Virus record (IMG/VR): IMGVR_UViG_3300025133_009608
Span: 1 to 64,000 of that record
Strand: one strand, 5' to 3'
Length of the DNA: 64,000 nucleotides
The notes beneath the pieces were generated by a model. That model was not told the DNA's origin. It saw only the letters and a program-made list of their open reading frames with translations, and did not search any database. A program made the position numbers and the translations under genes. Below are positions 34,006-61,357 of the stretch, one piece after another; position 1 is the first letter of the stretch; every line of letters starts with the position of its first letter.

Positions 34006-35028
34006 TTATGCAGAAACAAGGCCGGTAGCAACACCACGTGGGTTGACGATACCGCAACCAACGATCTCAGAGATAACCCAACCAAGCTTAAGCTGCTTGG
34101 GCTCATCGGCGGGAAGCACCTCAATGTCCTGACGGACAGGCATCACGCCAACAAACTCTGGATCGGCGCAAGCAAATGCGCGACCAGCAGGAACAACCTT
34201 CGAAACAACAATGTCAGCACCGAAGATGTGACCGTAAAGGCCAGTCTGAAGAAGCTCACGCTGAGTTACAGGATCGACCTGAGAAGCACCAGCGCCACCA
34301 GCAGACTCCCAATTGAGCATATCAGTGAATTCGTTAATGTTCATGAAGTACTTGCTAGTAACAAGGTCCCAGCGATCGATTTGACGCTTAAGATTCAGCA
34401 TTCCCTGCTTGGAAAGCTCATCGGTAGTGGTTCCGTTATCAAGGGTTTGAGAAGCATTCTCGCCACCGAGGTTCGAATCACCAGCAAACTCAAGAGCAGA
34501 AAATACGTTAGCATCCTCTTGCGCCTGAATCTCTTGGCGGGCCTTTTGCTGAGCACGATCGATTACATTGAATCGACGACGCTTAACTTCGGCAATACGT
34601 ACCGTTGGGTTTGAAACAATTTCAAACTCAGGGATAGTTACTCTGTCGCCAAATACGCGTGACTCAGGAGCAGAGCCGTTGCTAGAAACAACAACAGCTG
34701 CTACGTCGATATCACGATCGTATACGGGAAGAGCGCCCTGTGGAAGAGGATCGACAACGAGCGCCTTGCGGGAAACTCCTTGATAATCCAGGTTGCGACG
34801 AATTGGGTTAGCCATAGCTTGGCCCAAAGCGATTTTGCCTTCCTGAGTCATAAGCGCCTGCTTAATCATCTCGTCCTTCTGGCCGTCATTCAGGCTCGCA
34901 GCAGTTGCGTGAGCCGAGCTTGATGGCTGAAGGTCTTCAATGATAGAAGCATACTTTACGATTTCAGAGAGAGCCTCTTGGACTCCGGAGGCGTTAATTT
35001 CACCATTTGTATTAAATAAGTTTGACAT
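34006..35028 (-). CDS. Major capsid protein (HK97 fold)
   Basis: 340 aa with strong codon bias and a terminator downstream. IRRNLDYQGVSRKALVVDPLPQG...NPTVRIAEV...IDRAQQKARQEIQAQED...GIVNPRGVA; downstream of the protease/scaffold. Confidence 0.85.
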   Translation of the reverse strand: MSNLFNTNGEINASGVQEALSEIVKYASIIEDLQPSSSAHATAASLNDGQKDEMIKQALMTQEGKIALGQAMANPIRRNLDYQGVSRKALVVDPLPQGALPVYDRDIDVAAVVVSSNGSAPESRVFGDRVTIPEFEIVSNPTVRIAEVKRRRFNVIDRAQQKARQEIQAQEDANVFSALEFAGDSNLGGENASQTLDNGTTTDELSKQGMLNLKRQIDRWDLVTSKYFMNINEFTDMLNWESAGGAGASQVDPVTQRELLQTGLYGHIFGADIVVSKVVPAGRAFACADPEFVGVMPVRQDIEVLPADEPKQLKLGWVISEIVGCGIVNPRGVATGLVSA

Positions 35029-35038
35029 TTTTTCCTCC

Positions 35039-35701
35039 TTATGCCTGTGCGTTGCCAGTGTAGAATACCGCTTGGTACTCCGTCACTGCCGCGCCGCCAA
35101 CGGCGACCGATGAAGTTGAAACAAGTGACGTATCTGCCATTGCCCCGATGTAAATACCAAGAACAGCGGATGTTCCGGCGGAGTCTGTAGTCAATAGACC
35201 GATGCCTGTTACTGTTACGCCATCTGCCTCAACGTGGGCAGCACCATCAGCAGACTCCAGTGGATCATTGACGCCCGCAGCGGCCAGCGTATCAGACTGA
35301 CTAGTTACGCCGTAAAGACCAGCCTGAGCCCAGACAGTTACCTTGCCTGAAGCACGATCAGTCTCGGGACCGAGAACAACAGCGCCACTAACAGTAGTTG
35401 CGCGACCAGCATTTGAGCCAATAAGTTGACCAAAAAGCGTGCCATAGTCACCAGCATCACCTTCATCGGCGAGGCCGCCAAGGCTTGCGGCAGTTCGGCC
35501 TGCGCGAGCAAAGTTTACGAGTCCAGCAGAATCAGTTAGTGCTTCGACATCGGCAGCATAACCTTCTGCACCGACAGCAGCTTCCGCCTTTAATTCGACA
35601 TACTCGCCACCCACAAGGGCACCGGCATCGCCGTCGTCAAGGTCAAACATCCCGAGAGGACGAAGACCTGGATTTAATAGTTTAAGAGCCATTTTTACCA
35701 T
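35039..35701 (-). CDS. Capsid decoration/cement protein
   Basis: Immediately upstream of MCP, G/A-rich beta protein, with the same codon bias as MCP. Confidence 0.55.
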   Translation of the reverse strand: MVKMALKLLNPGLRPLGMFDLDDGDAGALVGGEYVELKAEAAVGAEGYAADVEALTDSAGLVNFARAGRTAASLGGLADEGDAGDYGTLFGQLIGSNAGRATTVSGAVVLGPETDRASGKVTVWAQAGLYGVTSQSDTLAAAGVNDPLESADGAAHVEADGVTVTGIGLLTTDSAGTSAVLGIYIGAMADTSLVSTSSVAVGGAAVTEYQAVFYTGNAQA

Positions 35702-35796
35702 CTCCTTATAATATTGATAGTATATAATTTTCTTTTATTTTATTAAGAGAAATCCAACCATTGGATTGCCTTAATTAACTTAACATTTCCGGCTGA

Positions 35797-38235
35797 CTAC
35801 TTTTTGATTAATGACTTGTTTTGCAACCAAGCATAATTCGCTCTGTAGTTTCCAGTAGGAGTACTCATTGCCACTCCATGAGATTGACGCTTCTGTTCTA
35901 ATCCATTCTCCACAAGTCCGCCGCGACCAATTGCGTCAGAAACAACAATTGCCTTTGGATGTGCATCATGAATTAAATCTTCTCCGGTCTCATCGTGAAG
36001 CATGTAGTGCTCCTTATAGTCAGCCTTTCTTTTTTCTAGGCCCTCATCACACAAGCTGCTAAGCCCTGCATAATAAGCTTTCATATACTTATCATCACTA
36101 TTCTGACCCAATAAGGCGTCCTTATAATAAGATTTTGTACAATCGTCAGCAATTTTACTTAAATTGCCTTCATTATCCACATTATTTATGGAATTCTTTT
36201 TTGTCTCTTCAGTTGCGATTAGCGCAAACTTCTTGAGCTCATTAATTCTTTTGTTCATTCCAAACACTCCTCCTATGGAACCGTCACTCTGTGAGTCCGG
36301 AGAGGGGCCGCGTGGAGCCGCGCCATCTGAGGGTGCAGATGGTGGTGCTATCATTTGGTTTCTCATCCTTCTCTCTGCGGCTTGCTCTCGAGTATTGCTT
36401 CGTCTTCCTCCGAATCCGTGAAAAAGTCCAGATCCTGGAGCTCCACCTTCACGAGCCGCGTCATAAAAGCTACGCAACCCTCTATCTTCAATTAATTGAT
36501 TTCCAATTGACCGACTTCTAAATGCGCCCGTCGTCAAGAGGGCGTGTGCTGCGCGATTTGCCGCATACTGAATAAGGTGCGAGTCTGGAACTTCCTGAAG
36601 CCTTGCATCCGCTCGAAGCCTTGCAAGTTCAGATGTATATATCGCTCGACCGACCGCCTCATCTAAAGATAGTGCCAGCTCTGGCCCTGCAAGCCTGATG
36701 TCTCCGGCATTTCTTATGTGCTCTGTCCTTATCTCGGTTGGAATATTTACGAAACGAACCCCATATCCATCGAATACTACCGGCTCCTGAAACTCCACCT
36801 TTACCGGCGGAGTTCTCGTTTCAAAGCCTGGAGAAAATACTCTATTTGGATCATAATTCCTAGTAGTCCTGGCTCCGGAGCCGGCCTGTCCGGACATCAT
36901 TCTGCTCAACCAGCCTTCGAGCTCATTGCCCGCGCCCTCAAGGCAATCACGGAGAGATAAAATCGCCGCCGATGCGTGGAGCCAAGTATTCATATCAGTG
37001 GTGCTTGCCTCCAAATCATTTCCGTTAGTTTCGATATATGAAGCTAGCTGATTTACTGTACCATTCAGAGCGAGCGCCGTAGCAACGGCAGACTCCGAGT
37101 TAGCACCAGTTATGGCCTCGGGATTCATGGATCCAAGTCCTATAATCTCATCCAAACCCTCTCTATTTCCAATAATATCAGATACCATTCTATCAAATTC
37201 CGTCTGATATGCAGGATCGGCAAACCCCACCGAAGATATCTTATCTATAGTATCATCTACGCTACTAGCGCAGCTAGAATATCTTGATCCTATTGATGAC
37301 CACATCCCTGGGGGCCATGTTGGACGCTCTTGTGCTCCGGGGCCATCGGGGGCGAAAAACCCCTTGACCCAGCGGACAAGGCTGCTTCCTAAATATATAT
37401 AAGCTCCTGCCAGTATCGCGGTGTAAAGCGCTCCTCGCATAACAATGCCTCCGACCGACGCCCCTATGCCCCTTCTTGCTGCACCTCCGGCTCGACCGGC
37501 GCTCTGCAGTCCTTCCAGGCGCCCAGTTAAGCGGGCTATCTCTGCAGCATCCTCTGCTCTATCGGCAGCCCTGAGCTCGTCCAATCTGCGCGTTACATCC
37601 GCCAATTCATCGCTATGCCTTGCTCCAAGTTCAGCCAATTCATCGCCGTGCCGAAGCGCAGCCTCAGCCTCAGCCGCTGCGGCCCTGGGACCCCTAAGCA
37701 GCCCATCCATAACCTCGTCTGCATTTCCTGTGACCCCGGCGTCTTGAAGCGCGGCCCGAATCATCCTGGGGTCTATATCCCCTCCAGTATGAGCCTGTCT
37801 CGCTAACAAGTTTAGTGTGAAATTTTCTGCTTGACCTGGGGATCGAAATGAACGCACCAAATCCAGTCTACCTATCCCCGAACGCTCCAGGAGAACCAAG
37901 GCCTCGGCCGGAGAGCTAAAATTCAGCGCCGTGGACAACTTTCTTGATGCAGCAGCGCCATGCCTTACTATTCCGGCACCGGCCGGAGAAAAATAATCCG
38001 TCAAAAAGCCAGAGCCAGAAGTCCAAGTGCGGGCCTGAGCTGTACCGGGGCGCCCCACAGTAATTGTAGCCCTAGGAGATGGAGTTACGCGATCAGTACC
38101 CCTTAGGACCTCGGCAAGCTCATCGATTGTGGTTAATCTCCCGGCTTCTTTTTTTATTTCACGGCGAGATGCAAACTTCTCCATGGAGGCAATGAAATTA
38201 TTAAATACATCAGATTTTTCAGAACTATTTATCAT
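35797..38235 (-). CDS. Large putative internal head/ejection protein
   Basis: G/A/R-rich core with one hydrophobic segment, flanked by KKEAG and KKFAL/KIAD motifs. Confidence 0.45.
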   Translation of the reverse strand: MINSSEKSDVFNNFIASMEKFASRREIKKEAGRLTTIDELAEVLRGTDRVTPSPRATITVGRPGTAQARTWTSGSGFLTDYFSPAGAGIVRHGAAASRKLSTALNFSSPAEALVLLERSGIGRLDLVRSFRSPGQAENFTLNLLARQAHTGGDIDPRMIRAALQDAGVTGNADEVMDGLLRGPRAAAAEAEAALRHGDELAELGARHSDELADVTRRLDELRAADRAEDAAEIARLTGRLEGLQSAGRAGGAARRGIGASVGGIVMRGALYTAILAGAYIYLGSSLVRWVKGFFAPDGPGAQERPTWPPGMWSSIGSRYSSCASSVDDTIDKISSVGFADPAYQTEFDRMVSDIIGNREGLDEIIGLGSMNPEAITGANSESAVATALALNGTVNQLASYIETNGNDLEASTTDMNTWLHASAAILSLRDCLEGAGNELEGWLSRMMSGQAGSGARTTRNYDPNRVFSPGFETRTPPVKVEFQEPVVFDGYGVRFVNIPTEIRTEHIRNAGDIRLAGPELALSLDEAVGRAIYTSELARLRADARLQEVPDSHLIQYAANRAAHALLTTGAFRSRSIGNQLIEDRGLRSFYDAAREGGAPGSGLFHGFGGRRSNTREQAAERRMRNQMIAPPSAPSDGAAPRGPSPDSQSDGSIGGVFGMNKRINELKKFALIATEETKKNSINNVDNEGNLSKIADDCTKSYYKDALLGQNSDDKYMKAYYAGLSSLCDEGLEKRKADYKEHYMLHDETGEDLIHDAHPKAIVVSDAIGRGGLVENGLEQKRQSHGVAMSTPTGNYRANYAWLQNKSLIKK

Positions 38236-38237
38236 TA

Positions 38238-38669: not shown

Positions 38670-38713
38670 AATATTAGAATAAATTAGTAGTTTTAATAAC
38701 TAACTTTATTTGC

Positions 38714-39487: not shown

Positions 39488-39991
39488 TTAGTTGCTAACA
39501 ATGTTAGAAATTGTAGCCCTTACCATGTCTCCTGCGAAAGTATCTCCGTCTCTATCAAAATCTCCTGCGAGTTTTTCCAGATTACCGACCAACGAGCCTC
39601 TCTCTGCTGCTTCCTTCTTAATATCATCGCTAATACTAATTGCGGTTGCCTCAACCATATCTGCAGCAAACCCCTCGCCCTTAAGGCGAAGACTTGCGGC
39701 AATCTTCCCAAGGCCCGTCATAATCTGCATGTCTCTACTTGCAAAGGCTTCGACTTCCTTGTCAATTGCCGCTGCCACCGGGTCGGCGGCTGGGGCGTTC
39801 TGGTCTACGAGAAAGTCTTCGGCCTTTTCTTCTACTTCTGCTGCGAGATTGTCTAATACAGATTCGGAATCAGAGTCAGAAGCGAAATCACTTTCTGCCT
39901 TTGCAATTGCCTCTTTCCGGAGTCCAGGAGCCTCGGTGAGCCTTATAAACTCACCGAGGATGGAATTTCCATTTCTTTTCAGACTGATCAT
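39488..39991 (-). CDS. Head-module protein with two LxK[IL]AxxLxxxG helical-hairpin motifs
   Basis: LGKIAASLRLKGEGFAADMV and LEKLAGDFDRDGDTFAGDMV. Confidence 0.55.
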   Translation of the reverse strand: MISLKRNGNSILGEFIRLTEAPGLRKEAIAKAESDFASDSDSESVLDNLAAEVEEKAEDFLVDQNAPAADPVAAAIDKEVEAFASRDMQIMTGLGKIAASLRLKGEGFAADMVEATAISISDDIKKEAAERGSLVGNLEKLAGDFDRDGDTFAGDMVRATISNIVSN

Positions 39992-39994
39992 GGG

Positions 39995-42900
39995 TTACTC
40001 CCAGAGCGAAGAAAGGGAGGTTGCGGTCATTCGACCCTCGGATGGGGCGGCATCAGTTTCAACTCCAACATTTACACCACCAAGATCTGAAGCAATCTTT
40101 GTAGTGTGAACTGCTCGTGCATTAGCAATGCTTCGCTTAAAGGCTTCAAATGCCTTTCCGTCAAATGACATAATCTCATCCACTTGATTGTCCAAGGCAA
40201 CCTTTGACATGGGAAGAAGGCCCTTGCGCTGCATTTCCATGCCTACATCATAGGCCCTTCTAAGCATTACTCGGTATTCCTCTCTGCCTTCATCTGCCTT
40301 CTTCTCGGCAAAGCTTTCGCTTAGTTTTGCTTTAATTACTGACGCAGAATCCGACCCAGAAGCTTCTTTAGTAGCATCGGCAGCAGAAGCAGAGACCTCT
40401 ACTGAAGCCTCTATTGCTTCCGTGGCAACCGTCGAGACGGGAGCCTCGGCAGTGGCCGACCTGAGAAGGTCCGCTCTACGTGCGGCACGAGCCTCTAGCA
40501 CTTTACGATCGGCATTTCTAAGAATGCCCTCACGACGCTGACGACGAAGACTCATTGCATCCTTTACCAGAGCATCAACCTCGCTAGAGGCTTCGGTCTC
40601 GATAGGTACCGGAAGATCTGACTCAAGAACGTCATTAACCATGGACTCATCCAGTGGGTCTTCTACGCAATTAAGGGGATCTTCTGCGCAATTAAGGGGA
40701 TCTTCTACATATCCGATTTCTTCTCCTGCGCATGGTTCTGCGGTCTTTGTCATTGCTCTCGCAACTCTGATAAGAGCCTTGGCCTCACCGGTTACCTCGT
40801 CGCAATCTTTTACGGCCGCGGATGCGAGCTTAGTAAAGTGACCGCGCTGTTCAGCAGACAACTTAGACAGGTTGTCATAAGTCTCGGCGACCATCGATAT
40901 TTCATCAGCAGACTCGTCGAGCTGACTATGCGCCGTCTTGAGTTGGCGCACAATTTCAGCAGCCAAAGAAAGCGTCTCCTCTGCGTCTCCGCCGGCGTCT
41001 CCTCCGGGCATGATGTTTACGTCAACATCGGCAACACGATCGTCGGCCAGTTGGTCTGCAAGGTCACGAACCTCTGAGATTAGGCCTTCCATTTCGGCAA
41101 GCCTATTATCAATAGCCTCACCTGGAGGGACCTCTTCTTCTGCGAGTGACTCTTCCATAGGGGCCTCGTCCATAGGTGGAAGCTCCGGCATTCCGCCGGC
41201 CTCCATCGATGGAGCTTCAGCAAGCTCTGCGCCCATCGGCGGAAGCTCTGGCATCGGAGCCGCACCAACATCCTGCGCACCCTTAAGGAGGCCGCGCACA
41301 TGCTCGAGGCCGCTGGCGCGAATTTGCTTACAGACTTCTTGACCATACTCTCTACTTGCAAGCCACTTCCACTGGCCATCAAGCTCTTCGCCAAATATCT
41401 CTCCAGCAGTTGCTGTAATTACATTATCATCGCCAGAAAATACGCTAAACTCAGAATTCTCGCGATCAACGCTTCCATCCGAAGCCTTTTTCACGGAAAG
41501 CTTTGTCTTTAGTCCTGGGCCAGTATATGCCGCACGACTAAGCTTGCCCTTAACCTCTGCGTCACCGGGGTGCATACCATCTGCCCCACCCATGCTGCCA
41601 GTCTGCTGCATTTGCTTGTCCTGGTTGTCTCTAATGCTTTTCTGTGCCGCACCCTCATCCTTGTAGGTTCCGGTTGGCTCTACGCCTTCCGATCCGCCCT
41701 GATGATAGGCCGTGCGACGAATTCTGCGCTCTTCGAGCTCTGCACGACTAAGCTTGCCCTTAACCTCTGCGTCACCGGGGTGCATACCATCTGCCCCACC
41801 CATGCTGCCAGTCTGCTGCATTTGCTTGTCCTGGTTGTCTCTAATGCTTTTCTGTGCCGCACCCTCATCCTTGTAGGTTCCGGTTGGCTCTACACCGTCC
41901 GCGCCGCCTTGGTGATAAGCAACACGACGACGCATCTCTGCTCTCTTGCGTAATCTTGACTCGTTCATAATTTCCTCCATTATTGAATTTATTGAAATGT
42001 CATCTACATAATCTCCAAGCCCGTTATTATCACTCGCGAATGCGACTGACGGTTCACTCAACCCAGGAGGTGGGACTGGAATAACCCCTCCTGCGTCGTT
42101 TTCAAAATCTGGCGCCTCTCCAGTGTCGCTGCCAAACATGGTTGGCGTCGGAAGATCTGGAGTTGGCAATGCGGCCGGCTCACCGGACACAGTTGTATTC
42201 TCTGCCAGAGAAGTCTCTGGAAGGTTTGTGTTTAAAATATTTTTTAGCTTATCGATTGCAGCTTTAACCTCTGGGGAGTCGGAATTTCCATACTCCTCTA
42301 TGGTCCTTACAATTGCTGATATCTTTGAGGCATCTGCAATCTCGGATGATGACAGATTAGAAGTCTGCTCTGCAACTTCAAGAGCAACCGCAGAAGGCTC
42401 TTCCGCCTCCTTCACTAGGCCATTATTCCCAAGAAAGCTTTTTACAATGCTCTCTCTTCTGGTTAGCGAGCATCCGTCAGGACCACACGCAGTCTTCATT
42501 ATTCCATTCAAATGCTCGGCCTGTTGGACAGATAGCCTCCCAAGCATCGCGTCAACATCTTCAACGCCATGGGATATAAACTCATTTCTATAGTCTCTTA
42601 GTGAGGCAACCACCTTTAGCAGTACTGCTCCCGGCTCGGCCGGAGTTACTACAAGGCTATATTCAATCGGCTTTAATCCGACATTCACCTCTCCGTAGGC
42701 AGTGTGATTCGTAACGTGCGGGCAGTAATCACTCTGAACTTGTGCTCGATTCCCACAGTCAGTGCATATCGACGTCTCGACGGCGGTGCCCATGGACCCG
42801 TACCGAACCATGCCAGTCTCTACCTTTCTTGCCAGGTCTGGGTAATTGACCTTGTCTAAGGCACACAGGCCAACAACTTGCTTGAACTTTTCGTCGTAGT

Positions 42901-43321
42901 GAGTATCCAAAATAATTCCACGAATTCCGTCCACAGAGCTTGATTCGTGATCACGACATAGCGGCATTCCAACCCACTTAGTGGTTGCCTTCTTTAGTTC
43001 GCTCTCTGGAAATAGATCGCCATTATTATTTTTATGCGGATCCACGTTTCCATGCCACTTCCAATCTTCATCATAAAAGCCCCAAGCATCCTCTCCGCTT
43101 GCGAGCTTCTTTGGAAGCCCGTTCTCTCCGAGAATCGCCGACTCAGCAGCCTTTAAGAATATAATTGAAAAGTATAGAAAATCGTCCGACTTGGGAGCAA
43201 TAGATCTTATATCATTTGCAAGCTTTGTCATGCGGTCTACCAAAACTTTATTTGCCAAAATTTCTTTGGTAGAAACGGACTTAATCACAGTCCCGGACGA
43301 ATAGCTAACTTTCTTAATCAT
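39995..43321 (-). CDS. Prohead protease (HK97/assemblin fold) fused to long scaffold
   Basis: NNNGDLFPESEL, LCRDH (His), YGSMG (Ser), CTDCG..CPH zinc site, EYSLVVTPAEPGA; acidic coiled-coil C-terminal region. Confidence 0.75.
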   Translation of the reverse strand: MIKKVSYSSGTVIKSVSTKEILANKVLVDRMTKLANDIRSIAPKSDDFLYFSIIFLKAAESAILGENGLPKKLASGEDAWGFYDEDWKWHGNVDPHKNNNGDLFPESELKKATTKWVGMPLCRDHESSSVDGIRGIILDTHYDEKFKQVVGLCALDKVNYPDLARKVETGMVRYGSMGTAVETSICTDCGNRAQVQSDYCPHVTNHTAYGEVNVGLKPIEYSLVVTPAEPGAVLLKVVASLRDYRNEFISHGVEDVDAMLGRLSVQQAEHLNGIMKTACGPDGCSLTRRESIVKSFLGNNGLVKEAEEPSAVALEVAEQTSNLSSSEIADASKISAIVRTIEEYGNSDSPEVKAAIDKLKNILNTNLPETSLAENTTVSGEPAALPTPDLPTPTMFGSDTGEAPDFENDAGGVIPVPPPGLSEPSVAFASDNNGLGDYVDDISINSIMEEIMNESRLRKRAEMRRRVAYHQGGADGVEPTGTYKDEGAAQKSIRDNQDKQMQQTGSMGGADGMHPGDAEVKGKLSRAELEERRIRRTAYHQGGSEGVEPTGTYKDEGAAQKSIRDNQDKQMQQTGSMGGADGMHPGDAEVKGKLSRAAYTGPGLKTKLSVKKASDGSVDRENSEFSVFSGDDNVITATAGEIFGEELDGQWKWLASREYGQEVCKQIRASGLEHVRGLLKGAQDVGAAPMPELPPMGAELAEAPSMEAGGMPELPPMDEAPMEESLAEEEVPPGEAIDNRLAEMEGLISEVRDLADQLADDRVADVDVNIMPGGDAGGDAEETLSLAAEIVRQLKTAHSQLDESADEISMVAETYDNLSKLSAEQRGHFTKLASAAVKDCDEVTGEAKALIRVARAMTKTAEPCAGEEIGYVEDPLNCAEDPLNCVEDPLDESMVNDVLESDLPVPIETEASSEVDALVKDAMSLRRQRREGILRNADRKVLEARAARRADLLRSATAEAPVSTVATEAIEASVEVSASAADATKEASGSDSASVIKAKLSESFAEKKADEGREEYRVMLRRAYDVGMEMQRKGLLPMSKVALDNQVDEIMSFDGKAFEAFKRSIANARAVHTTKIASDLGGVNVGVETDAAPSEGRMTATSLSSLWE
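40656..40708. repeat. 21-bp coding tandem repeat (EDPLNC x2.5)
   Basis: ggatcttct[ag]cgcaattaagg repeated. Confidence 0.8.
41532..41893. repeat. 210-bp-period coding duplication in scaffold region
   Basis: 41532..41683 is identical to 41742..41893. Confidence 0.9.
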
Positions 43322-51648: not shown

Positions 51649-52266
51649 TTAACGAGCGCCGTCGTGGCTCATGAATTCGGGAACAGTATCAGTTGGAGAT
51701 TCATTTAAATCCAAACCACTTGTTGGAGTATACATTACTGACTCTGGAGCTCCAGAGTGCTTTGCAACCTCCTTCTCGATGAATCCGAGAATTTTATCTG
51801 GATCTATCTTTGATTCTACTATATTCCACTCTAATCCTGGGGCTAATCTGCAATTTCTTAAGATTGCGGCAGGAGAAAGCTCCTGCCTGTCCTTGGCAAT
51901 CGCTCGAATGTAATCGAGAATCTGGTCTATCAGCCTTAGGGTTTCTTCATCTCCGGCTCTGGGATTCGACGAATCACAGGATTTGCACTTGCCGCCACCG
52001 GCGGATTCATTACAACAGGTCGCCCCACATGCCGCCTCTTTTATATTATTTGAATCTTTATCAACTCCTTTAATCAGGTCATATCCAACTCGAGTTCGAA
52101 TATCTGCCATCTTCTCTTCAATTGTTTTCGGCTCGTTTCTCTGCTTAAACACAGATTTGAGACTAGAAAGAAAATCGGCATTCTTCTCGAAGGAGCCTGC
52201 AAAATCATTCAACCAATCGACTGTGGTTGAATATTCTTCTGTAATGTTTTGTCTTTTTATTTTCAT
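51649..52266 (-). CDS. Head-module hypothetical protein
   Basis: Operon position; EKNAD and KEAA motifs. Confidence 0.6.
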   Translation of the reverse strand: MKIKRQNITEEYSTTVDWLNDFAGSFEKNADFLSSLKSVFKQRNEPKTIEEKMADIRTRVGYDLIKGVDKDSNNIKEAACGATCCNESAGGGKCKSCDSSNPRAGDEETLRLIDQILDYIRAIAKDRQELSPAAILRNCRLAPGLEWNIVESKIDPDKILGFIEKEVAKHSGAPESVMYTPTSGLDLNESPTDTVPEFMSHDGAR

Positions 52267-52906: not shown

Positions 52907-53389
52907 TTATTCCCCTTTCGTAAGATCTGGAACTATACGAATATACGTAGCCCTGTGATTCAGCGCTCCGCCGGGAGGCGGAGCGGTATCATGTAATACG
53001 CTTAGCGGCAGTGAGTTTAGCTCGTGAATTTTCCATCCAGTCGGCAAGCTATCAGTCACGATCCTTCTCGTAAATGAATCCTTATCCTCCCCTCCCAAGG
53101 CCGAGATTCCCTCTGCGTGATATCCAAATATAATCACTGGCGCACGACCAACATTGGACTTTCTATATCCCAACCTGGCCCTATAGTGACGAGCCTGCTC
53201 GTCGCTCGTATGCGGGGCGGATAAATTAATTTTGCTAGATACCGATCCTATCGCGGCGAGTACTTCGCTTCTTCTTTGCTCGAGAAGGTTTGGATTCATA
53301 GATGCTATAACCGCATCCAAAGCATCAGCCTCTTTTACAAAGCCCCTGCCATCTAACGAGTTTGCAATTTTAATCAGATCCCTAATCAC
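52907..53389 (-). CDS. Head-module protein with LIKIANSLDxxG leader
   Basis: MIRDLIKIANSLDGRGFVKEADALD. Confidence 0.55.
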   Translation of the reverse strand: MIRDLIKIANSLDGRGFVKEADALDAVIASMNPNLLEQRRSEVLAAIGSVSSKINLSAPHTSDEQARHYRARLGYRKSNVGRAPVIIFGYHAEGISALGGEDKDSFTRRIVTDSLPTGWKIHELNSLPLSVLHDTAPPPGGALNHRATYIRIVPDLTKGE

Positions 53390-53681
53390 CCGCTTCTCCG
53401 CGAAACAATGGGGATGTTGATGTGAACCCCTGAATTCCCCTAAGAGATGGATTCAAATCCGCCCCAGACTCTATCGCTGCTACGGCCCTGGCCACATATT
53501 CTAAGAGAGTGTGAACTGACTTTATTTGCCCAGAAGTAGGTCGACCCTCTTCTAGCGCCTGCGCCGCAAGCAGGCCAACTGACCGAGCTAGAGCTACAGC
53601 GTCTGAGCTTACAGTGGCATTTTTTATTAAATTATAATTTCTTTTTGATGCTATCTTTTTCATTTTAAAATCCTTATGCAA
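53382..53681 (-). CDS. Head-module small protein
   Basis: MKKIAS and LIKNAT motifs. Confidence 0.5.
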   Translation of the reverse strand: MHKDFKMKKIASKRNYNLIKNATVSSDAVALARSVGLLAAQALEEGRPTSGQIKSVHTLLEYVARAVAAIESGADLNPSLRGIQGFTSTSPLFRGEAGD

Positions 53682-54690
53682 AGTAATTCTTTATAAAGTC
53701 AACGCCGCGATTATTGGTATCTTTTTCTTTTGAATCACCAGGCCCGTATGTTCCTCGATCTTTAAATATATGATATCCGCTGTCTGCAACAACTTGCATG
53801 ATCGACAGCTCTTCGCGAGGTGTGATGTCATATTTCTTATTAAGAAATCCATAAACCTCTTCCATATCATTCCCTGCTGAAACATGAGCATTTATCATAA
53901 TTCCAGAAATTGCACGCTCAAAAGCGGTCACTGCAATCACCATATTGTTTGGAGTAGATGCCTCTTTTGTTAGCTCGGAGTATTCAACTTCGGCACCGGA
54001 ACGGGAAATCCACGCTGGTACAACATTTTCCTCTGCATCTTTTGAAATAACGATATCTTCGGTTGCATTTTTCTTATGAGAGTCTTTAAATTTCTTTTTT
54101 AACTTTCCTAGGTGATTTTTTAAAACCATTATATCTTTCATTACATTAAGCCTAACATCTTCGAGAACCGACAGGTCAATGGAGTTATCCGAGTCATCCC
54201 TTACTGCTCTCGACATCTCCGAATTCAGCTTGTCCAAGAAGCTTACTGCTCTTTCGCAACCACTTATGGATTCGCCATCATGCTGCGGGATGTTTGCAGG
54301 ATATATCTGATAAACATAATCCATAAACTTTGACAAATCTCCGTCATTTGCATAATCAGTTTCTACTTCCTCTTCAGAATCTGCGTCTGACTTGGACACA
54401 AAGCTTCCAGGAAGAAGCTCCTCTCCGTGGTCTTCATCCATACCCTCCAGATCCTCTTCTATGTATTCTAGAGTTTCCTGCATATCATCGATTCCACCTT
54501 CACCCTCGATAAACTCTTCGACGTACTCGTGAACGCTTACATCTGACTCTGGTGACTCAAGCTCTTCCTCGAAGAAAACACCTTCATCGTCAACAAATGA
54601 TTCAATATATGAGTCGCTGGAGTTATCCATGAAGCTGGGTGAAGCCTTTCGGCTGATTTTTTTATTAGACATTATAATTCTCCTATCCAA
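53674..54690 (-). CDS. Acidic head-module protein
   Basis: Highly acidic N-terminal half; SRKAS, KKNAT, TKEAS. Confidence 0.6.
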   Translation of the reverse strand: MDRRIIMSNKKISRKASPSFMDNSSDSYIESFVDDEGVFFEEELESPESDVSVHEYVEEFIEGEGGIDDMQETLEYIEEDLEGMDEDHGEELLPGSFVSKSDADSEEEVETDYANDGDLSKFMDYVYQIYPANIPQHDGESISGCERAVSFLDKLNSEMSRAVRDDSDNSIDLSVLEDVRLNVMKDIMVLKNHLGKLKKKFKDSHKKNATEDIVISKDAEENVVPAWISRSGAEVEYSELTKEASTPNNMVIAVTAFERAISGIMINAHVSAGNDMEEVYGFLNKKYDITPREELSIMQVVADSGYHIFKDRGTYGPGDSKEKDTNNRGVDFIKNYFA

Positions 54691-55948: not shown

Positions 55949-55958
55949 GGCCTAAATC

Positions 55959-57596
55959 CTAGATTTCTTCTGTCTGTACTGGGGCAGCCTCGCCAGCTGG
56001 GAGGTCGGGAGCTGCAGGCTCCAGCTCCGGCGAAGCCTCTTCTTGTGAAGGCTCCCCTTGCGGAGTCGTATCACCGCTTTTTGCGCCCGGCAGTCCCGCC
56101 TGGGCATCTATGAGTCCCTTGGCGGTGGCCAGTTGTCCCATCATCTTTGTGACTCGAGTTAGAGCATAAGAATACCCATCAATTAATTTACTCTGAGACT
56201 CTGCTAGTTCCGGAAACATTGCGGCGATTCCAAGTCGATCTAACATTATATCAAACTCTGCCAATAATCTAATAATTCTTCTATCTGCAAGCATTCCCGC
56301 AACATCGTCGAGCTTTGAAGCTGCATCTGTAAGGCCTATCTCTCCAACCAGGCCTTCATACTCTCCCTCTTTCGCCCCGGGAATGGGGGTTATCTTCTCC
56401 AGGCCGACCGGCTCCACCTCGTTTGGACCAGGCAGCCCAAGTTCTTTTGCTTTAATTTCAGCATCTGAATCTGGAGAATCTGGCAACGAAGCTGGGCCGT
56501 CTGGCTCCGATTGTGCCGGAACCGGCGGAGGCACTGGCTGCGGAGTCGGGGAGGTTTGAGCGGGAGGATCAGCATCTGGAACTTCTTGTGCAATTTTCAC
56601 AAGAACATCAGAACCGGCCTTGTGTCCGTTCTTTCTTAGAATATTTGCAGTCTGATATGCCAAATCTGACGCGGTACGGGGAGATAGCCCAACAACCTTG
56701 ACGCTCATGTTCATTAGGGCCTCAGATAGGTGCTTGTAGGCATCTGGGTCAATTTCCTCTGATCTTATTAATTTATCAATTCTTCTGATCGCTGAGTGCA
56801 AGCGAAGCTTCCAGTTTCTAAAATTCCTGCCCTTCTCTTCGTCGGCCTCAGCACTGCGAACTGCGCCCGAGAAGTCACGACCCGCGAGGTGTGATGCTCC
56901 GACGTCATCATAATTTCCCGCCCCGAGAACTCCGGACATGTATACTGATTTTTTCTCTATTTTGTTGCTTTCTGATGCCATTTTATACCTCTCGTGATCT
57001 CCATCATTATAATACTTAAACCATCTTTTAAACTTGATATCTTCCTCTTTCTCTTTATTTAAAAAATTACTATAATAATCAACGGCAGCAGTTCTCGTCA
57101 TGTTCCCCGAAGATGTTGACTTCTGAATTTCATAAACAAGATCGATCCATTTATTTACATCAAACTGCGCCTCATAAACATCCGGGTTAACGGAAGACAT
57201 ATTTGGATATGCAAGTTTCTTTATCTTAGAGAGACTGGCCTTTGCCTTTACTATATTAAAATAAACATCATTTTCAGTTTTCATAGGGATTCCTCCAGAA
57301 ATTGCACGAGAAATAACAGATAAATCGATTTCACCAACTAGTTTTTTCATATGCCGCCTAAGCACTATATACTTTCTCGCTCGCTCCTCAGAATTTACTC
57401 CAGCCGTTGTCATCATCTTTGCGCTTTCAAGGGCATAAGATGCAAATCCATCTTTGCGGTCTGCTGATATATTTTTAATCTTATTATAAAAAAACTGATT
57501 AATATCCCCAGAAATGAAGGCCCTTTTTATAACGTAATCCATTGAATCTTTCATTTCTTTCTCATATCTCTTATCTTTGAAATTGCAGAAATCCAC
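55959..57596 (-). CDS. Head-module hypothetical protein
   Basis: KKLAY and VKIAQ motifs with P/E-rich linkers. Confidence 0.6.
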   Translation of the reverse strand: MDFCNFKDKRYEKEMKDSMDYVIKRAFISGDINQFFYNKIKNISADRKDGFASYALESAKMMTTAGVNSEERARKYIVLRRHMKKLVGEIDLSVISRAISGGIPMKTENDVYFNIVKAKASLSKIKKLAYPNMSSVNPDVYEAQFDVNKWIDLVYEIQKSTSSGNMTRTAAVDYYSNFLNKEKEEDIKFKRWFKYYNDGDHERYKMASESNKIEKKSVYMSGVLGAGNYDDVGASHLAGRDFSGAVRSAEADEEKGRNFRNWKLRLHSAIRRIDKLIRSEEIDPDAYKHLSEALMNMSVKVVGLSPRTASDLAYQTANILRKNGHKAGSDVLVKIAQEVPDADPPAQTSPTPQPVPPPVPAQSEPDGPASLPDSPDSDAEIKAKELGLPGPNEVEPVGLEKITPIPGAKEGEYEGLVGEIGLTDAASKLDDVAGMLADRRIIRLLAEFDIMLDRLGIAAMFPELAESQSKLIDGYSYALTRVTKMMGQLATAKGLIDAQAGLPGAKSGDTTPQGEPSQEEASPELEPAAPDLPAGEAAPVQTEEI

Positions 57597-57802
57597 TCTG
57601 ACTTATCATTTAGTGTTCTTCCCATTATTCTTGTTTTTATCTTCTCTTCTATAAAATCAAGGTAGGCCAATGCATTTGCATCAGATATTTCCTGCTCGCC
57701 CTCGACACCGTGGTCTTTTAGCCACTTTTTAAAAGATATGATGCTATTTAGATTCTTAATCCTTAATATTGAATACCCTTTTTCTTCAAAATCAAGTGAC
57801 AT
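57551..57802 (-). CDS. Small hypothetical protein
   Basis: Start overlaps the upstream stop. Confidence 0.4.
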   Translation of the reverse strand: MSLDFEEKGYSILRIKNLNSIISFKKWLKDHGVEGEQEISDANALAYLDFIEEKIKTRIMGRTLNDKSEWISAISKIRDMRKK

Positions 57803-58493: not shown

Positions 58494-58530
58494 GCCACTC
58501 GAAGGAACACGCTATTATTGGTCCGTACGG

Positions 58531-59244
58531 TTACGGCATAACCTCTGAGGAGTAGGAGTCCTCTGCGGTCTCAAGTGCGGCCTCGTCATCGGATAAAACA
58601 ATAAGACCCGCAGGACTGCCGTCCCTAGTCCATAAGAAAGCTTTTGCGGCAAAGCTTTCTTTATCAATCTTAATTGTTACACTATGAATTCCGTCGGCAG
58701 GCCGCGGCTCTGATGCTGAAAATATATTACCAGGACTATGCCCAGCCTCTTCCATTTTTAACTCTGCGGACCCATGAAGATAATGAATTGGCCATATGTA
58801 TTCGAGGCCCACATCATCGCTCCTGGGCCCGATGATGATATCATCGCTAACTGATACCTCATCGCTCTCGCCTATACTATGTAGATCCGCCTCCTCTAAC
58901 TGTGGACCATCCTCTAGAACTCTTACTATCTCAGAGATGAGCATTGGCGATTCTCTTAAGATATCTGAGACATCTTTTATCATCCCACCCCTTCCCTGCT
59001 CGTCTCGTGCAAGAAATGGGGCTCCAGCCACAATATAGCCAGCAAGTTGCTCGGAAAGCTCCGCCGTCACGTCGTCTTCGCTCTCTGCGTTTTCCGCCCC
59101 ACGGCTCTCATCCGACTGCTCGTCGGCCTCTCCGAATGGATCAAACTTCATGGCGGCCTTTATCATGGTGTCGACATCATCGGATAAATCGGTACGACCC
59201 AATCTATCTAGCTTATCCGCAAGCCTTATCAAGTCGTTGACCAT
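58531..59244 (-). CDS. Head-module protein with LIRLADKLDxxG leader
   Basis: MVNDLIRLADKLDRLGRTDLSDDVDTMIKAAM. Confidence 0.55.
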   Translation of the reverse strand: MVNDLIRLADKLDRLGRTDLSDDVDTMIKAAMKFDPFGEADEQSDESRGAENAESEDDVTAELSEQLAGYIVAGAPFLARDEQGRGGMIKDVSDILRESPMLISEIVRVLEDGPQLEEADLHSIGESDEVSVSDDIIIGPRSDDVGLEYIWPIHYLHGSAELKMEEAGHSPGNIFSASEPRPADGIHSVTIKIDKESFAAKAFLWTRDGSPAGLIVLSDDEAALETAEDSYSSEVMP

Positions 59245-59792
59245 TATTTGGCTCCTATGATCTCAATCAGCCTTGAGACGTCTGAACCCGAAACCCTCTT
59301 TAAGGCTCTCTTTACAATAGCGGCATCATATGATGCCATTGTCATCATCTGAGACTGCAGAGAGGCGCTTCCGGCGGGGAAGTCTACTCCGCTATCTGTC
59401 TTAAACCCCTCATTGTAATCATAAATCTTATTTGTATAAGGATCCTTATATACTCCGTCAGAAACTCTTTGAGCCTGAACCCCAACGTGATCAGGAGAAT
59501 ATCTCGTCGACAAGTGTGGGGCTACATGCTCCGTTGGGACATAAGAGTCCTCATGCTCTGGGCCTACGTTGTATAGCGGTCGCTCGGCAGTCTCTCCTCC
59601 GCGCTGCGAAAGATACCTCTCTCTAGTCGCATACTCTGTTACTCCAGACTGAAAGTGCTGAAAGATGCCATGCTGGTCCGCTGCAGATTCCTTTTTGAGT
59701 TCCGGCATAATTGCGGACAACTTTAGCATTCTATTTTTTCTGCTAGAATCCGACATAGAAAACAAAATCTTGCTTAAATTATCATTAATCAT
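59244..59792 (-). CDS. Head-module hypothetical protein
   Basis: Operon position. Confidence 0.6.
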   Translation of the reverse strand: MINDNLSKILFSMSDSSRKNRMLKLSAIMPELKKESAADQHGIFQHFQSGVTEYATRERYLSQRGGETAERPLYNVGPEHEDSYVPTEHVAPHLSTRYSPDHVGVQAQRVSDGVYKDPYTNKIYDYNEGFKTDSGVDFPAGSASLQSQMMTMASYDAAIVKRALKRVSGSDVSRLIEIIGAK

Positions 59793-59800
59793 TTTAACCC

Positions 59801-61357
59801 CTACGTTATGGATATTTTTGAAGAAGAGATTAAAGCACCCGGCCCGAATGCATCGTCTGAGGCCACGGTTCTATGGGTTGGGATCATTCTTCCTTTCTCA
59901 TCAAAGCTTATTTTGCTCATGGGGAGCCCAAGCCTGGGAGAGTAAAGCTCAACAGATGTTGGAAGGACGATTAGCTCGCCATTATCTTTTGCCCTGCTAA
60001 TTAGCTGGTCTCTTTCGGTGTTCTTTGAGGCGTGCTTTAGTAGCTTCGTAAAGCGATCTAACGCAGCAAGATACTGTCCTCCCTCAAATCTTGAGCCAAT
60101 AGACGCAAGGGCATCTTCCGCGGCCCGATAGTCCCCATTAGATGCTCCAGATGCCATAATTCCCATTAGCTCGTCGTAGGATGCCTTTGACATCTCATTG
60201 GTCTGACGAGAAATTCGATCAATCTGGTCTGAAGTGGCGGTTCCGACTATCTCGCCTATTGAGGCGCTGGTCATCGGGTACGTTTCGTCTCCCATGGCGA
60301 ACTTGCTCGGAATTACCGGTCGGCCATTTGGCATATCAACGGGAACGAGGATGGATTTTCTCCCCAGCGAGGTGGGGATGCTCGCCTTTAGGACTAGCGT
60401 TTTTGAATTTGACGATGCAACGTTTATCTGCGGATTCGTCACGCCAAGGCCGCGAAGCTCTCCGGCTAACACTCCGGTTGCGAGCCGGACCTGGCTAACA
60501 GTGAAGCTAGATGCCGCCGCCACCAGATCACTCTCAAGATCAGCATACTTCTCGAGCGATGCGGGGACTACTACCATTTCTGCAGAAAAATCATCAACGC
60601 GGCGCTCTGCGGCATACCGCCCCTGAGATGCTGCCTTTTTAATTGTTTGATTTTCCTTCATATGAACATAAAGAGATTCTTTTGTCATCTCTACAACGTC
60701 CGTCCCCTGAATGAAGTGCTTTGGAATAGAGGGAATTCCATTAGAGATCTGTACTGGCACAGAAAGTGATACTTGGGTATGATCCGATGTATCAAATGAT
60801 GCATTACAAAGTATAAAGTGTTCATTTGTTCTTACTGTCGAAACAGACGCGGGGATGTGACCCATTGAAGTCAGTTGAATCTTCACGAACTTCTCAGCCT
60901 TCTTCATCAGGCTGTTTCCGTGAGCCGATACTGGCCCCGAAGCCTCAAGGGAAAACACGCCGGACAGCTCTTTTGACAGAGCGGAATCTTCAAATATTGG
61001 ATCGGCTGAGTTTTCGTCCATCGCCCGTGAGGCCGATGCGCCGGTAGTGCCGCCGCTATCAATGACAGAATTAACGGGCAGAAGATCATTTAGATTCTGG
61101 CGAAAAGCAGTCTTTCCTCCGGAGAATCCATATAAGTGATTGTAAAAATCACCAATCTGAGCCTGAGTTATGAATCGGTCTTTTGCTCCATGTGAGCGAA
61201 CAACATCTTTCATTGAGCCAATTAGTACGTCTCTTGGATTTAAAGATGCCGCCTTTTCTAGGCGGTCGAGGACATACTCTGTCGTATACCTTTTTCCATT
61301 AGTCATCTTATCCAAGGCTTTTCTTGCCTCTAAAATAATTTTTGTAATCTCTTTCAT
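59801..61357 (-). CDS. Head-module protein with two internal repeated domains
   Basis: VSLSVPVQISNGIPSIPKHF and KSILVPVDMPNGRPVIPSKF. Confidence 0.6.
   Translation of the reverse strand: MKEITKIILEARKALDKMTNGKRYTTEYVLDRLEKAASLNPRDVLIGSMKDVVRSHGAKDRFITQAQIGDFYNHLYGFSGGKTAFRQNLNDLLPVNSVIDSGGTTGASASRAMDENSADPIFEDSALSKELSGVFSLEASGPVSAHGNSLMKKAEKFVKIQLTSMGHIPASVSTVRTNEHFILCNASFDTSDHTQVSLSVPVQISNGIPSIPKHFIQGTDVVEMTKESLYVHMKENQTIKKAASQGRYAAERRVDDFSAEMVVVPASLEKYADLESDLVAAASSFTVSQVRLATGVLAGELRGLGVTNPQINVASSNSKTLVLKASIPTSLGRKSILVPVDMPNGRPVIPSKFAMGDETYPMTSASIGEIVGTATSDQIDRISRQTNEMSKASYDELMGIMASGASNGDYRAAEDALASIGSRFEGGQYLAALDRFTKLLKHASKNTERDQLISRAKDNGELIVLPTSVELYSPRLGLPMSKISFDEKGRMIPTHRTVASDDAFGPGALISSSKISIT

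Follow-up and report, generated by a model that had tools for sequence, protein, structure and literature searches.

A hydrophobic-x-Lys-x-Ala motif enriched in the head proteins of an uncultured marine jumbo phage: a putative capsid-maturation cleavage and targeting signal

The head-maturation proteases of tailed phages recognize short sequence motifs. The T4 protease gp21 cuts at L/I-x-E, after the Glu, and those of phiKZ, 201phi2-1, and SPN3US (gp175/gp245) cut at S/A/G-x-E, likewise after the Glu; these motifs are read at alternate positions, serve to remove N-terminal propeptides (which carry multiple sites) from capsid, portal, and many internal proteins and to destroy core or scaffold proteins, and can be used to predict the substrates (PMC10052503, PMC5694885). 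The HK97 protease gp4 is a small stand-alone enzyme for which no defined multi-residue consensus is known to us, and the gp5 sequence at its established maturation site reads T-F-N-K103 followed by S-L, without any Ala requirement. Herpesvirus assemblins cut after Ala, usually before Ser, have no Lys requirement at P3, act on only two types of site (R and M), and are fused to a scaffold that they cleave. Short terminal capsid-targeting tags are also known, such as the capsid-targeting sequence (CTS) of the T4 internal proteins, which ends at a protease site, the C-terminal coat-binding helix-turn-helix of the P22 scaffold, and the encapsulin cargo-loading peptides.

Here we analyzed a window of 64,000 nucleotides (positions 1 to 64,000 of the IMG/VR record IMGVR_UViG_3300025133_009608), in which a sequence-only reading had drawn attention to a pervasive [ILMFV]-x-[KR]-x-A motif (written Phi-x-K-x-A below) in the head module at positions 34006-61357. 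This observation was confirmed. All of the 27 example strings listed in that reading are present in minus-strand open reading frames (ORFs) of this region, where the broad motif occurs 68 times in 24 of 26 ORFs and the strict form [ILM]xKxA 42 times, in agreement with the figure of about 40 obtained by eye. Within-protein shuffles gave an expectation of only 23.4 +/- 4.7, and shuffling within blocks of 10, 20, or 40 residues gave about 24. The enrichment persists when the 1108-aa protein is left out (52 vs. 20.3 expected) and is present in both sub-blocks (45 vs. 15.4 at 34006-51627 and 23 vs. 7.9 at 51649-61357), whereas the rest of the window is at chance (23 vs. 22.7). In the tail-side block 1-33873 (20 vs. 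21.1), the motif, which had been described as scarce in tail and replication genes, is at chance and not depleted, the window containing too few replication genes for these to be judged.

The signal is specific to one order and one spacing of the residues. Of the six orders and 16 spacings of the same residue classes, only this one stands out clearly: the five other orders gave 13-31 instances and the other spacings 14-29, apart from Phi-K-x-A (48) and Phi-x-K-A (37). In an unbiased scan of 8000 gapped triples of the form a.b.c, L.K.A, M.K.A, and I.K.A ranked first, second, and fourth. The three positions are coupled, since Ala follows [ILM]xK 42 times vs. 13.6 expected. The possibility that the enrichment is a mere by-product of the composition or secondary structure of helix-rich, Lys/Ala/Leu-rich head and scaffold proteins is very unlikely: although the head proteins have somewhat more Ala and Lys than the rest of the window and [ILMFV]...A is mildly enriched (240 vs. 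205), composition-preserving shuffles do not account for the counts, acidic and S/G/E variants of the motif are not enriched, and the position and conservation data presented below also argue against it. Synonymous codon use at the motif positions matches the background, so that the signal is at the protein level, and no paralogy was detectable among the head proteins, which are therefore unrelated, as had been proposed. The motif is found in the first 40 residues of 15 of the 26 proteins, as compared with 2.6 expected, which confirms the N-terminal bias. The preference claimed for the edges of acidic or Pro-rich linkers was not confirmed, as the flanking composition was 0.49 vs. 0.475, a non-significant difference. 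One instance, MVKMA at the start of 35039-35701, is probably an artefact of start-codon choice, because most of the orthologs begin at the second Met.

The enrichment was found in all 27 related metagenomic loci, with z = 2.1 in the shortest locus and 5-11.5 in the other 26, and in 135 family representatives less than 50% identical to each other (832 vs. 245, including 596 vs. 184 in the divergent C-terminal parts). Many individual sites persist in orthologs only 33-45% identical, while the x positions vary (Table 1). The motif Ala is conserved at 0.72 vs. 0.43 for other Ala residues (p = 1.5e-5), whereas the x positions are no more conserved than the background. Conservation alone does not prove that an instance is a site, however, since some conserved instances are located in folded cores or in non-head proteins (FLKAA in the first strand of the protease fold, aa 85 of the major capsid protein (MCP), TerL aa 125, and aa 173 of a primase-like protein). 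Several Arg variants lie in conserved folded cores (MCP aa 85, portal aa 119, and TerL aa 125), and not every instance is likely to be a site.

Table 1. Positions in the 64,000-nucleotide window of the proteins and sites carrying the Phi-x-K-x-A motif.
Positions	Strand	Feature	Motifs and their retention	Basis
39995..43321	-	1108-aa protease-scaffold fusion; protease domain (about aa 60-240) at 42602-43144; C-terminal ~800 aa helical and charged	16 instances, 12 of them in the C-terminal ~800 aa, predicted to chop it into pieces of 155 aa or less	PHROG head maturation protease; alignments; AF2 model and Foldseek; motif positions and conservation in 20-34 homologs
42947..42949	-	Codon of His125, candidate catalytic His	Invariant in 71 family members	Alignments
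42794..42796	-	Codon of Ser176 (G-S-M-G), candidate nucleophile	Invariant	Alignments; hhalign places it on Ser114 of HK97 gp4, but at low probability
42404..42418	-	Low-confidence linker just after the protease domain; candidate self-release site	LVKEA (aa 302-306); orthologs keep Phi-x-K-x-[A/S]	Alignments; homolog comparison; AF2 model
43217..43231	-	N-terminal pro-region of the protease	MTKLA (aa 31-35), retained in 97% of homologs, matched by GLVKTA in phage G gp19	Homolog comparison
34006..35028	-	Major capsid protein (340 aa); motifs predict a short N-terminal propeptide; homologous phage G MCP aligns only from aa 44	IVKYA at aa 23-27 (34948-34962), 100% conserved; MIKQA at aa 54-58 (34855-34869), 88% conserved	Homolog comparison
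35797..38235	-	812-aa protein of unknown function; low predicted-structure confidence; candidate core or internal protein	7 motifs, two of them at aa 18-31	Motif positions; structure prediction
39488..39991	-	167-aa scaffold-like protein directly downstream of the protease gene; two copies of the 30-aa module, at aa 94-122 (39626-39712) and at the extreme C-terminus, aa 137-167 (39491-39583)	Four motifs (aa 24, 94, 124, 138), retained in 58-100% of orthologs about 39% identical overall	Homolog comparison; module search
43639..45843	-	734-aa protein with a DUF192 domain	LSKRA at aa 565-569 (44137-44151), kept in 90% of orthologs only about 33% identical overall	Homolog comparison
46724..48097	-	457-aa protein	IKKEA at aa 5-9 (48071-48085), followed by a Pro/Thr-rich stretch	Motif positions
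48139..49836	-	Portal protein; phage G portal has MAKQA at aa 16	ISKTA at aa 11-15 (49792-49806), kept in 76% of orthologs, with 3 more as A->S/G	Homolog comparison
51649..52266	-	205-aa protein next to TerL	FEKNA at aa 26-30 (52177-52191), kept in 74-88% of orthologs about 37-41% identical overall	Homolog comparison
52907..53389	-	160-aa orphan protein; N-terminal 30-aa module (aa 3-33, 53291-53383); candidate packaged cargo	LIKIA and FVKEA in the module	Module search
53382..53681	-	99-aa orphan protein	Two N-terminal motifs (MKKIA at aa 7, LIKNA at aa 18)	Motif positions
53674..54690	-	338-aa protein	LTKEA at aa 240-244 (53959-53973), kept in 100% of 38 orthologs with varying x positions; N-terminal ISRKA kept as Phi-x-K-x-[A/S] in about 79%	Homolog comparison
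55959..57596	-	545-aa protein	IKKLA at aa 125 (57210-57224) and LVKIA at aa 332 (56589-56603), each kept in 95% of 43 orthologs about 42% identical overall	Homolog comparison
58531..59244	-	237-aa orphan protein; N-terminal module (aa 3-33, 59146-59238); hypervariable slot where relatives encode other module-bearing proteins	LIRLA and MIKAA in the module	Homolog comparison; module search
59244..59792	-	182-aa protein	IVKRA at aa 159 (59304-59318), kept in 94% of orthologs	Homolog comparison
59801..61357	-	518-aa protein	5 motifs; LLKHA at aa 439 kept as LLKH[A/S] in 97% of orthologs	Homolog comparison
61371..61877	-	168-aa protein just outside the 34006-61357 region	FRKVA at aa 42 (61740-61754), kept in 100% of 34 orthologs	Homolog comparison

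The 1108-aa protein carries at its N-terminus a prohead-protease domain of the HK97/assemblin fold, with a zinc-ribbon insert, followed by the motif-studded tail. It matched the PHROG "head maturation protease" at E = 1.5e-11, and an AF2 model (pLDDT 83) had herpesvirus assemblins (4v07, 1o6e, and 1nkk) and T4 gp21 as its best matches in the PDB and phage G gp19 and COG3740 prohead proteases as its best matches in the BFVD. The TM-scores of the PDB matches are modest, however (0.28-0.44), the sequence identity with the assemblins is only 8-13%, the Ser176 region aligns only weakly with the Ser114 region of HK97 gp4, and the domain gave no Pfam hit, including S78. The protease is closer to the HK97/COG3740 type than to T4 gp21, and differs from HK97 gp4 in its fusion to a tail of ~800 aa, whereas fusion to a scaffold and a strict Ala determinant recall the assemblins, although these do not cut at dozens of sites. 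As compared with the T4 and phiKZ codes, the motif spans five residues, and its key residues are Lys and Ala and not Glu. The T4-like [LI]xE and phiKZ-like [SAG]xE motifs are not enriched here, and the specificity would indeed be different, as had been proposed.

The closest cultured relative is the Bacillus/Lysinibacillus phage G, the MCP (gp27) of which is 51% identical and the protease domain (in gp19) about 39% identical. Its head genes show a weaker version of the enrichment (27 vs. 13.4, 7 of these instances being in gp19), and gp19 keeps the N-terminal site, but gp19 is a 300-aa stand-alone protease, the MCP lacks the first ~43 residues, and the 30-aa module described below was not found in the first 45 kb of phage G. 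In the more distant mycobacteriophage Catera, the enrichment is weak (23 vs. 13.3).

A conserved terminal module of about 30 aa (consensus KDLIKLANHLDRKGLTKEADLVDATIKKISKE), which is helix-turn-helix-like and is built from two or three motif units, was identified on at least about 15 unrelated proteins, including the products of orphan small genes. A total of 149 copies were counted in 103 proteins across 19 cargo clusters, at N-termini (18), at C-termini (57), or internally (74). Like the T4 CTS, the P22 scaffold helix-turn-helix, and the encapsulin peptides, it is a short conserved terminal peptide shared by otherwise unrelated, fast-evolving small proteins encoded in variable slots near head genes, but it is longer, occurs at either terminus and in tandem, and consists of repeats of the putative cleavage motif; the resemblance is one of arrangement, no sequence similarity being claimed. 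It lends independent support to the idea of a packaging code, and the module is a likely capsid-targeting tag, although this function is only inferred.

The existence of this module also raises the possibility, which we consider unlikely but which is not excluded, that the motif is a binding signal and not a cleavage site, i.e., the conserved start of a short helix docking on the inner capsid surface or on the scaffold, in a pure packaging or assembly code like those of the P22 scaffold or the encapsulin cargo peptides, in which case the isolated 5-mers would be degenerate copies of that helix. In the module, the motif lies in predicted helices, often just after G, N, or D as at a helix N-cap, several instances fall in predicted helices of the AF2 model, and the flanks are not enriched in linker-type residues; stable helices are poor protease substrates. 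On the other hand, the conserved positions alternate (i, i+2, i+4) with free residues between them, which is the signature of recognition in an extended strand and not of one helix face, and most of the instances lack the extended module pattern. The density of motifs in the protease's own tail and the double or triple sites at N-termini fit degradation and trimming better than docking, and the A->S tolerance and the exclusion of P, D, N, G, and A at the position after Phi resemble protease subsite rules. It is very doubtful whether the motif might be recognized by another enzyme acting on the Lys, such as a lysine-modifying or cross-linking activity: Lys is the central, most enriched residue in a fixed context, and HK97-type capsids use Lys in isopeptide cross-links, but no candidate modifying enzyme was seen among the head-module proteins scanned, and the N-terminal and multi-site distribution and the density in scaffold-like proteins match proteolysis.

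The sequence-only reading had inferred that the protease cleaves after K-x-A, thus processing a large set of capsid-packaged cargo proteins, and this interpretation was partly supported. The motif (Phi = L, I, M > F, V; K > R; A >> S) behaves as a selected short linear motif confined to head-module proteins, biased to N-termini and densest in the tail of the protease and in the neighbouring 167-aa scaffold-like protein, which is the pattern known for the T4 and phiKZ/SPN3US protease sites. The cut after Ala is not established, since a register in which it follows Lys (Phi = P3, K = P1, with Ala at P2') is equally defensible. This tentative variant is in line with the maturation site of HK97 gp5, cut by a protease of the same family, with the hydrophobic P3 also used by T4, with the K/R interchange typical of a basic S1 pocket, and with the fact that Phi-x-K without Ala is still slightly enriched (161 vs. 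139) whereas K-x-A without Phi is not (28 vs. 34). However, Ala is the position whose conservation departs most from its background, being replaced almost only by Ser, which suits a small S1 pocket as in the assemblins, and the conservation of the leader module ends at K-x-A-[G/S].

The most likely explanation, to which we assign a probability of roughly 0.6, is that Phi-x-K-x-A is the substrate motif of the phage's own prohead serine protease. In this view, the protease would enter the procapsid as a fusion with a long helical scaffold-like tail and, once activated, would bind extended peptide segments in which alternate side chains (Phi, K, A) face the enzyme. It would then trim short N-terminal propeptides from the MCP, the portal, and a set of internal proteins, cut itself and the neighbouring scaffold or core proteins at many sites so that the fragments can leave, and detach or fragment the 30-aa module. 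The enrichment, its specificity and N-terminal bias, the conservation of the sites, the protease fold with its invariant His and Ser, and the existence and distribution of the module are shown by the present analysis, whereas the cleavage of the motif, the involvement of this protease, and the targeting of proteins into the capsid by the module are inferred from sequence and predicted structure alone, in the absence of proteomic or biochemical data on this uncultured phage. If this reading is correct, the head module would use a prohead-protease cleavage code differing from the Glu sites of T4 and phiKZ, and the motif would be a predictor of capsid-packaged proteins.

The viral contig IMGVR_UViG_3300025133_009608, the first 64,000 positions of which form the window, is 316,664 bp long. 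All the genes in the window lie on the minus strand, and the PHROG profile assignments are included in the table below. No phage record in GenBank is similar at the DNA level. At the protein level, the nearest cultured relative is Bacillus/Lysinibacillus phage G, in which the major capsid protein (MCP) gp27 is 51% identical from residue 44 on and the protease gp19 is about 39% identical, while cluster C mycobacteriophages, Burkholderia phage BcepSaruman and others are more distant relatives.

Features of the window and their coordinates (all genes on the minus strand)
Feature	Positions	Length	Observations
Tail sheath and baseplate-like proteins	1-19 kb		PHROG assignments
Two adjacent giant paralogs	7121-10672 and 10676-15442	1183 and 1588 aa	Unknown function; 33% identical over about 980 aa; both carry a strict motif at residue 71 (IKKSA / ISKEA)
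Two further paralog pairs in the tail-side block	20030-21733 / 23669-25348 and 25400-26542 / 26544-27623		57% and 29% identical
Repeat protein	28643-30760	705 aa	Largely tandem ~42-aa repeats (…SNRVSGDLSLTTRLSMEESVRSSADVSLAAVDTAEI…); double motif at the N-terminus (VFKQALLKVA, aa 23-32)
Protein directly next to the MCP gene	32551-33873	440 aa	Histidyl-tRNA-synthetase-like region (phrog_16140)
Motif-rich head region	34006-61357		26 ORFs
MCP	34006-35028		PHROG assignment
Protein next to the protease gene	39488-39991	167 aa	Two copies of the ~30-aa module, one of them at the very C-terminus
Protein with a head-maturation-protease segment	39995-43321	1108 aa	PHROG phrog_18299 'head maturation protease', E = 1.5e-11
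Zinc-ribbon-like insert of the 1108-aa protein	42700-42770	aa about 186-203	Invariant C186, C189 and C200 (C-x-x-C, then a third Cys ten residues on)
Head-module protein	43639-45843	734 aa	DUF192 domain (aa 231-325, E = 5e-20) and a coiled-coil stretch
Portal	48139-49836		PHROG assignment
Large terminase (TerL)	49846-51627		PHROG assignment
Orphan protein	52907-53389	160 aa	Module at the N-terminus
tRNA-nucleotidyltransferase-like gene	55166-55948		Inside the motif-rich block, upstream of the terminase
Orphan protein	58531-59244	237 aa	Module at the N-terminus
Primase-like protein	62387-63130		PHROG assignment

The sequence-only reading had described a pervasive [ILMFV]-x-[KR]-x-A motif in the head module, and this observation holds. 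In a non-overlapping set of minus-strand ORFs (63 ORFs, 96% coverage), in which every instance of the motif was listed, all the examples cited in that reading were found. The 26 ORFs of the head region carry 68 instances, against 23.4 +/- 4.7 expected from within-protein shuffles, whereas the other 37 ORFs carry 23 against 22.7 expected. The Lys-only form [ILMFV]-x-K-x-A occurs 48 times against 12.3, and the stricter form [ILM]-x-K-x-A occurs 42 times against 8.1 across the two sub-blocks of the region. Both halves of the region are enriched, and the tail side is at chance. The enrichment is not due to the 1108-aa protein alone, since 52 instances against 20.3 remain when it is removed, nor is it inflated by paralogs, since no BLAST paralogy was detected among the head proteins. 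A DNA-level repeat or codon artefact was also ruled out, since codon use at synonymous positions is similar to the background, which places the signal in the protein.

The possibility that amino acid composition or helix periodicity might account for the motif was rejected on the basis of these shuffles, of shuffles within blocks of 10-40 residues, which leave the expectation at about 24, and of controls on order and spacing. The five other orders of the same three residue classes give 13-31 instances and other spacings give 14-29, apart from Phi-K-x-A (48) and Phi-x-K-A (37), where Phi is the hydrophobic residue; these exceptions reflect a hydrophobic preference at the second position and some slack. 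Variants with an acidic instead of a basic residue, or with S, G or E instead of A, are not enriched. In an unbiased scan of all 8000 a.b.c triples, L.K.A, M.K.A and I.K.A rank 1, 2 and 4 in the head set and are absent from the top of the other set, where the top-ranked triples (R.S.D, E.S.R) are caused by the repeats of the 705-aa protein. The three positions are coupled: after [ILM]xK, the residue two positions further on is Ala 42 times (13.6 expected) and never P, Q or H, while KxA not preceded by a hydrophobic residue is not enriched. Fifteen of the 26 proteins carry the motif within their first 40 residues (2.6 expected), often twice in a row. The preference for the edges of acidic or Pro-rich linkers suggested by the sequence-only reading did not reach significance. 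Not all of the 68 instances are likely to be sites: the Arg variants in folded cores (MCP aa 85, portal aa 119, TerL aa 125), FLKAA in the first beta-strand of the predicted protease fold and one probable start-codon artefact should be discounted.

The enrichment was found in every one of the 27 viral contigs encoding a homolog of the 1108-aa protein (40-55% identity), with z = 2.1 in the shortest locus and 5-11.5 in the other 26. A profile search of 1.84 billion cluster representatives with the protease domain yielded 1841 relatives, most of which are 1100-1500 aa long. In 135 of the best 150, which are mutually less than 50% identical, [ILM]xKxA occurs 832 times against 245 expected, including 596 against 184 in their divergent C-terminal parts. 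Some relatives (proteins P0007, P0013, P0073, P0112 and others in this search) are 1400-1660 aa long and carry the protease domain internally (about aa 470-700), with two matched stretches, which suggests N-terminal extensions or duplications in part of the family.

In the alignments of orthologs, many sites are retained while the two x positions change freely. The site at aa 138 of the 167-aa protein is retained in 100% of orthologs having an overall identity of about 39%, that at aa 565 of the 734-aa protein in 90% (about 33% identity), those at aa 125 and aa 332 of the 545-aa protein in 95% each (about 42%), that at aa 240 of the 338-aa protein in 100% (about 50%), that at aa 159 of the 182-aa protein in 94% (about 55%), and that at aa 23 of the MCP in 100% (about 85%). 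Motif alanines are far more conserved than the other alanines of the same proteins (0.72 vs 0.43, p = 1.5e-5), lysines are moderately more conserved (0.77 vs 0.64), and the x positions are not; when the Ala changes, it changes mostly to Ser. Some sites appear at non-homologous positions in variable regions of different lineages. The MCP is 78-89% identical across more than 80 viral contigs (loci L028-L107 of the related set), whereas the neighboring protease-scaffold, scaffold-like and internal proteins are only 30-55% identical, which is an unusually large contrast in evolutionary rate within one module. In phage G, the head genes show a weaker enrichment (27 vs 13.4), with seven instances in the protease gp19 and N-terminal instances in the portal, gp9, gp13 and gp20, and gp19 keeps a site where the window protein has MTKLA. 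In mycobacteriophage Catera, used as a distant test, the signal is marginal (23 vs 13.3).

Residues about 60-240 of the 1108-aa protein form the conserved core of the predicted protease. His125 and Ser176 (in G-S-M-G), the inferred catalytic residues, are invariant in 71 diverse homologs, as are Cys186, Cys189 and Cys200 of the inserted zinc-ribbon-like loop, which lies just after the candidate catalytic Ser and which, to our knowledge, has not been described in prohead proteases, and most positions of the 'PIEYSLVV.PAEPGA' strand. The gene lies between those of the portal and the MCP. Sequence searches gave no Pfam hit even at E <= 10 and no PDB hit, while a PHROG profile matched the protein. 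A hhalign alignment with HK97 gp4, in which Ser176 falls on Ser114, had a low probability and was not significant. An AlphaFold2 model based on 16 close homologs was unusable (pLDDT 51), whereas that built on the 71-sequence alignment is confident (pLDDT 83, and 95-98 in the core). The best PDB neighbors of this model are the pseudorabies, EBV and HCMV proteases and T4 gp21 (E = 6e-4 to 2e-2, probability 0.9-1.0, but TM-scores of only 0.28-0.44), and among the predicted viral structures there are 205 BFVD matches at E <= 1e-3, the best of which are phage G gp19 and many proteins named prohead protease or COG3740. These matches point to the assemblin-like fold of the HK97/T4-type prohead serine proteases. 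The domain is followed by a low-confidence linker holding LVKEA (aa 302-306), where orthologs have Phi-x-K-x-[A/S], and then by an ~800-aa helical, charged tail with 12 further motifs, which resembles the protease-scaffold fusions found in other systems.

When checking the N-terminal sites, we found a conserved ~30-aa module with the consensus KDLIKLANHLDRKGLTKEADLVDATIKKISKE, which in pattern form reads L-x-K-L-A-[NS]-x-L-D-x-x-G, then L-x-K-E-A-[DN]-x-L-D-x-x, then I-K-x-A. An hmmsearch profile built from it detected 149 copies in 103 of the 1675 distinct ORFs from the window and related loci (among them loci L003, L004, L012-L014, L112, L122, L126 and many others): 18 are N-terminal, 57 are at the extreme C-terminus and 74 are internal, the latter often in tandem. 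With the module masked, the 94 carriers having a copy at E <= 1e-3 fall into 19 BLAST clusters, 10 of which are singletons. The same short peptide is present at the N- or C-termini, or in tandem, of otherwise unrelated proteins. Related phages encode different module-bearing small proteins at the two genomic slots occupied in the window by the 160-aa and 237-aa orphan proteins. The 160-aa protein has no full-length homolog other than itself among 5.8 billion proteins, a full-length search with the 167-aa protein returned only unannotated proteins, and ESM Atlas look-ups of the 167-aa protein and of the 812-aa protein of the head region gave no usable lead. The carriers match no Pfam or PHROG family, and no mention of the motif, the module or phage G cleavage sites was found in the literature searched.

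This pattern matches that established in T4 and in phiKZ, 201phi2-1 and SPN3US (PMC10052503, PMC5694885): the motif is short, restricted to the head and read at alternate positions; it is concentrated at the N-termini of capsid, portal and internal proteins, very dense in the tail of the predicted protease itself and in scaffold-like neighbors, and conserved as a linear motif. We therefore take Phi-x-K-x-A to be the site code of the prohead protease of this phage, and the 30-aa module to be a capsid-targeting tag trimmed by the protease. The enrichment, its conservation and the distribution of the module are results of the analysis, whereas the catalytic role of His125 and Ser176, proteolysis of the head proteins, the position of mature termini at the motif and the packaging role of the module are inferred from sequence and from predicted structure. 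The alternation of the conserved positions points to recognition of an extended strand (P5/P3/P1 or P3/P1/P2') and not of one face of a helix, although a binding-only role for the motif, especially inside the module, is not excluded. The sequence-only reading, according to which the protease cuts after K-x-A, is partly supported: the protease and the role of the motif as a code are well supported indirectly, while cleavage itself and the position of the cut are unproven. The Glu-based motifs of T4 and phiKZ are not enriched here ([LI]xE occurs 108 times against 91.8 and [SAG]xE 157 times against 163.9), and although the motif would work like these codes, it does not belong to the Glu-specific group, so that the specificity would be new for a giant-phage head protease.

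Flanking-residue logos, natural protein termini and conditional enrichments did not discriminate between the two possible registers of the cut. Ala at P1 fits the precedent of the assemblins, the replacement of Ala mostly by Ser, and the end of the leader conservation at K-x-A-[G/S]. Lys at P1 fits HK97, whose gp5 is cut after F-N-K103, and the slight enrichment of Phi-x-K without Ala as compared with none in the case of K-x-A without Phi.

A more far-reaching reading, which is tentative and rather less likely than not, is that a large, globally distributed clade of marine jumbo phages related to phage G uses a two-part capsid 'zip code'. In this view, a ~30-aa terminal helix-turn-helix-like tag would load diverse, rapidly turning-over cargo proteins into the procapsid, which may be ejected anti-defence or takeover factors, and a Lys/Ala-specific HK97-family protease would read Phi-x-K-x-A units inside and outside the tag to release the cargo and dismantle the scaffold. 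If this is true, the packaged proteome of uncultured jumbo phages could be read directly from sequence.

Head-maturation proteases with a readable site code have made it possible to define the packaged and ejected proteomes of T4, phiKZ and SPN3US. A code of this kind in the present phages would give a defined specificity to an HK97-type protease, about which little is known, and the 30-aa module, which was an unexpected finding, is a candidate portable tag for loading proteins into large capsids. Given the 1841 cluster representatives of the protease family and the occurrence of the MCP on hundreds of viral contigs, a different and equally sharp code in this abundant, uncultured jumbo-phage clade would allow the same annotation to be made from metagenomes alone, and would flag orphan genes as capsid cargo.
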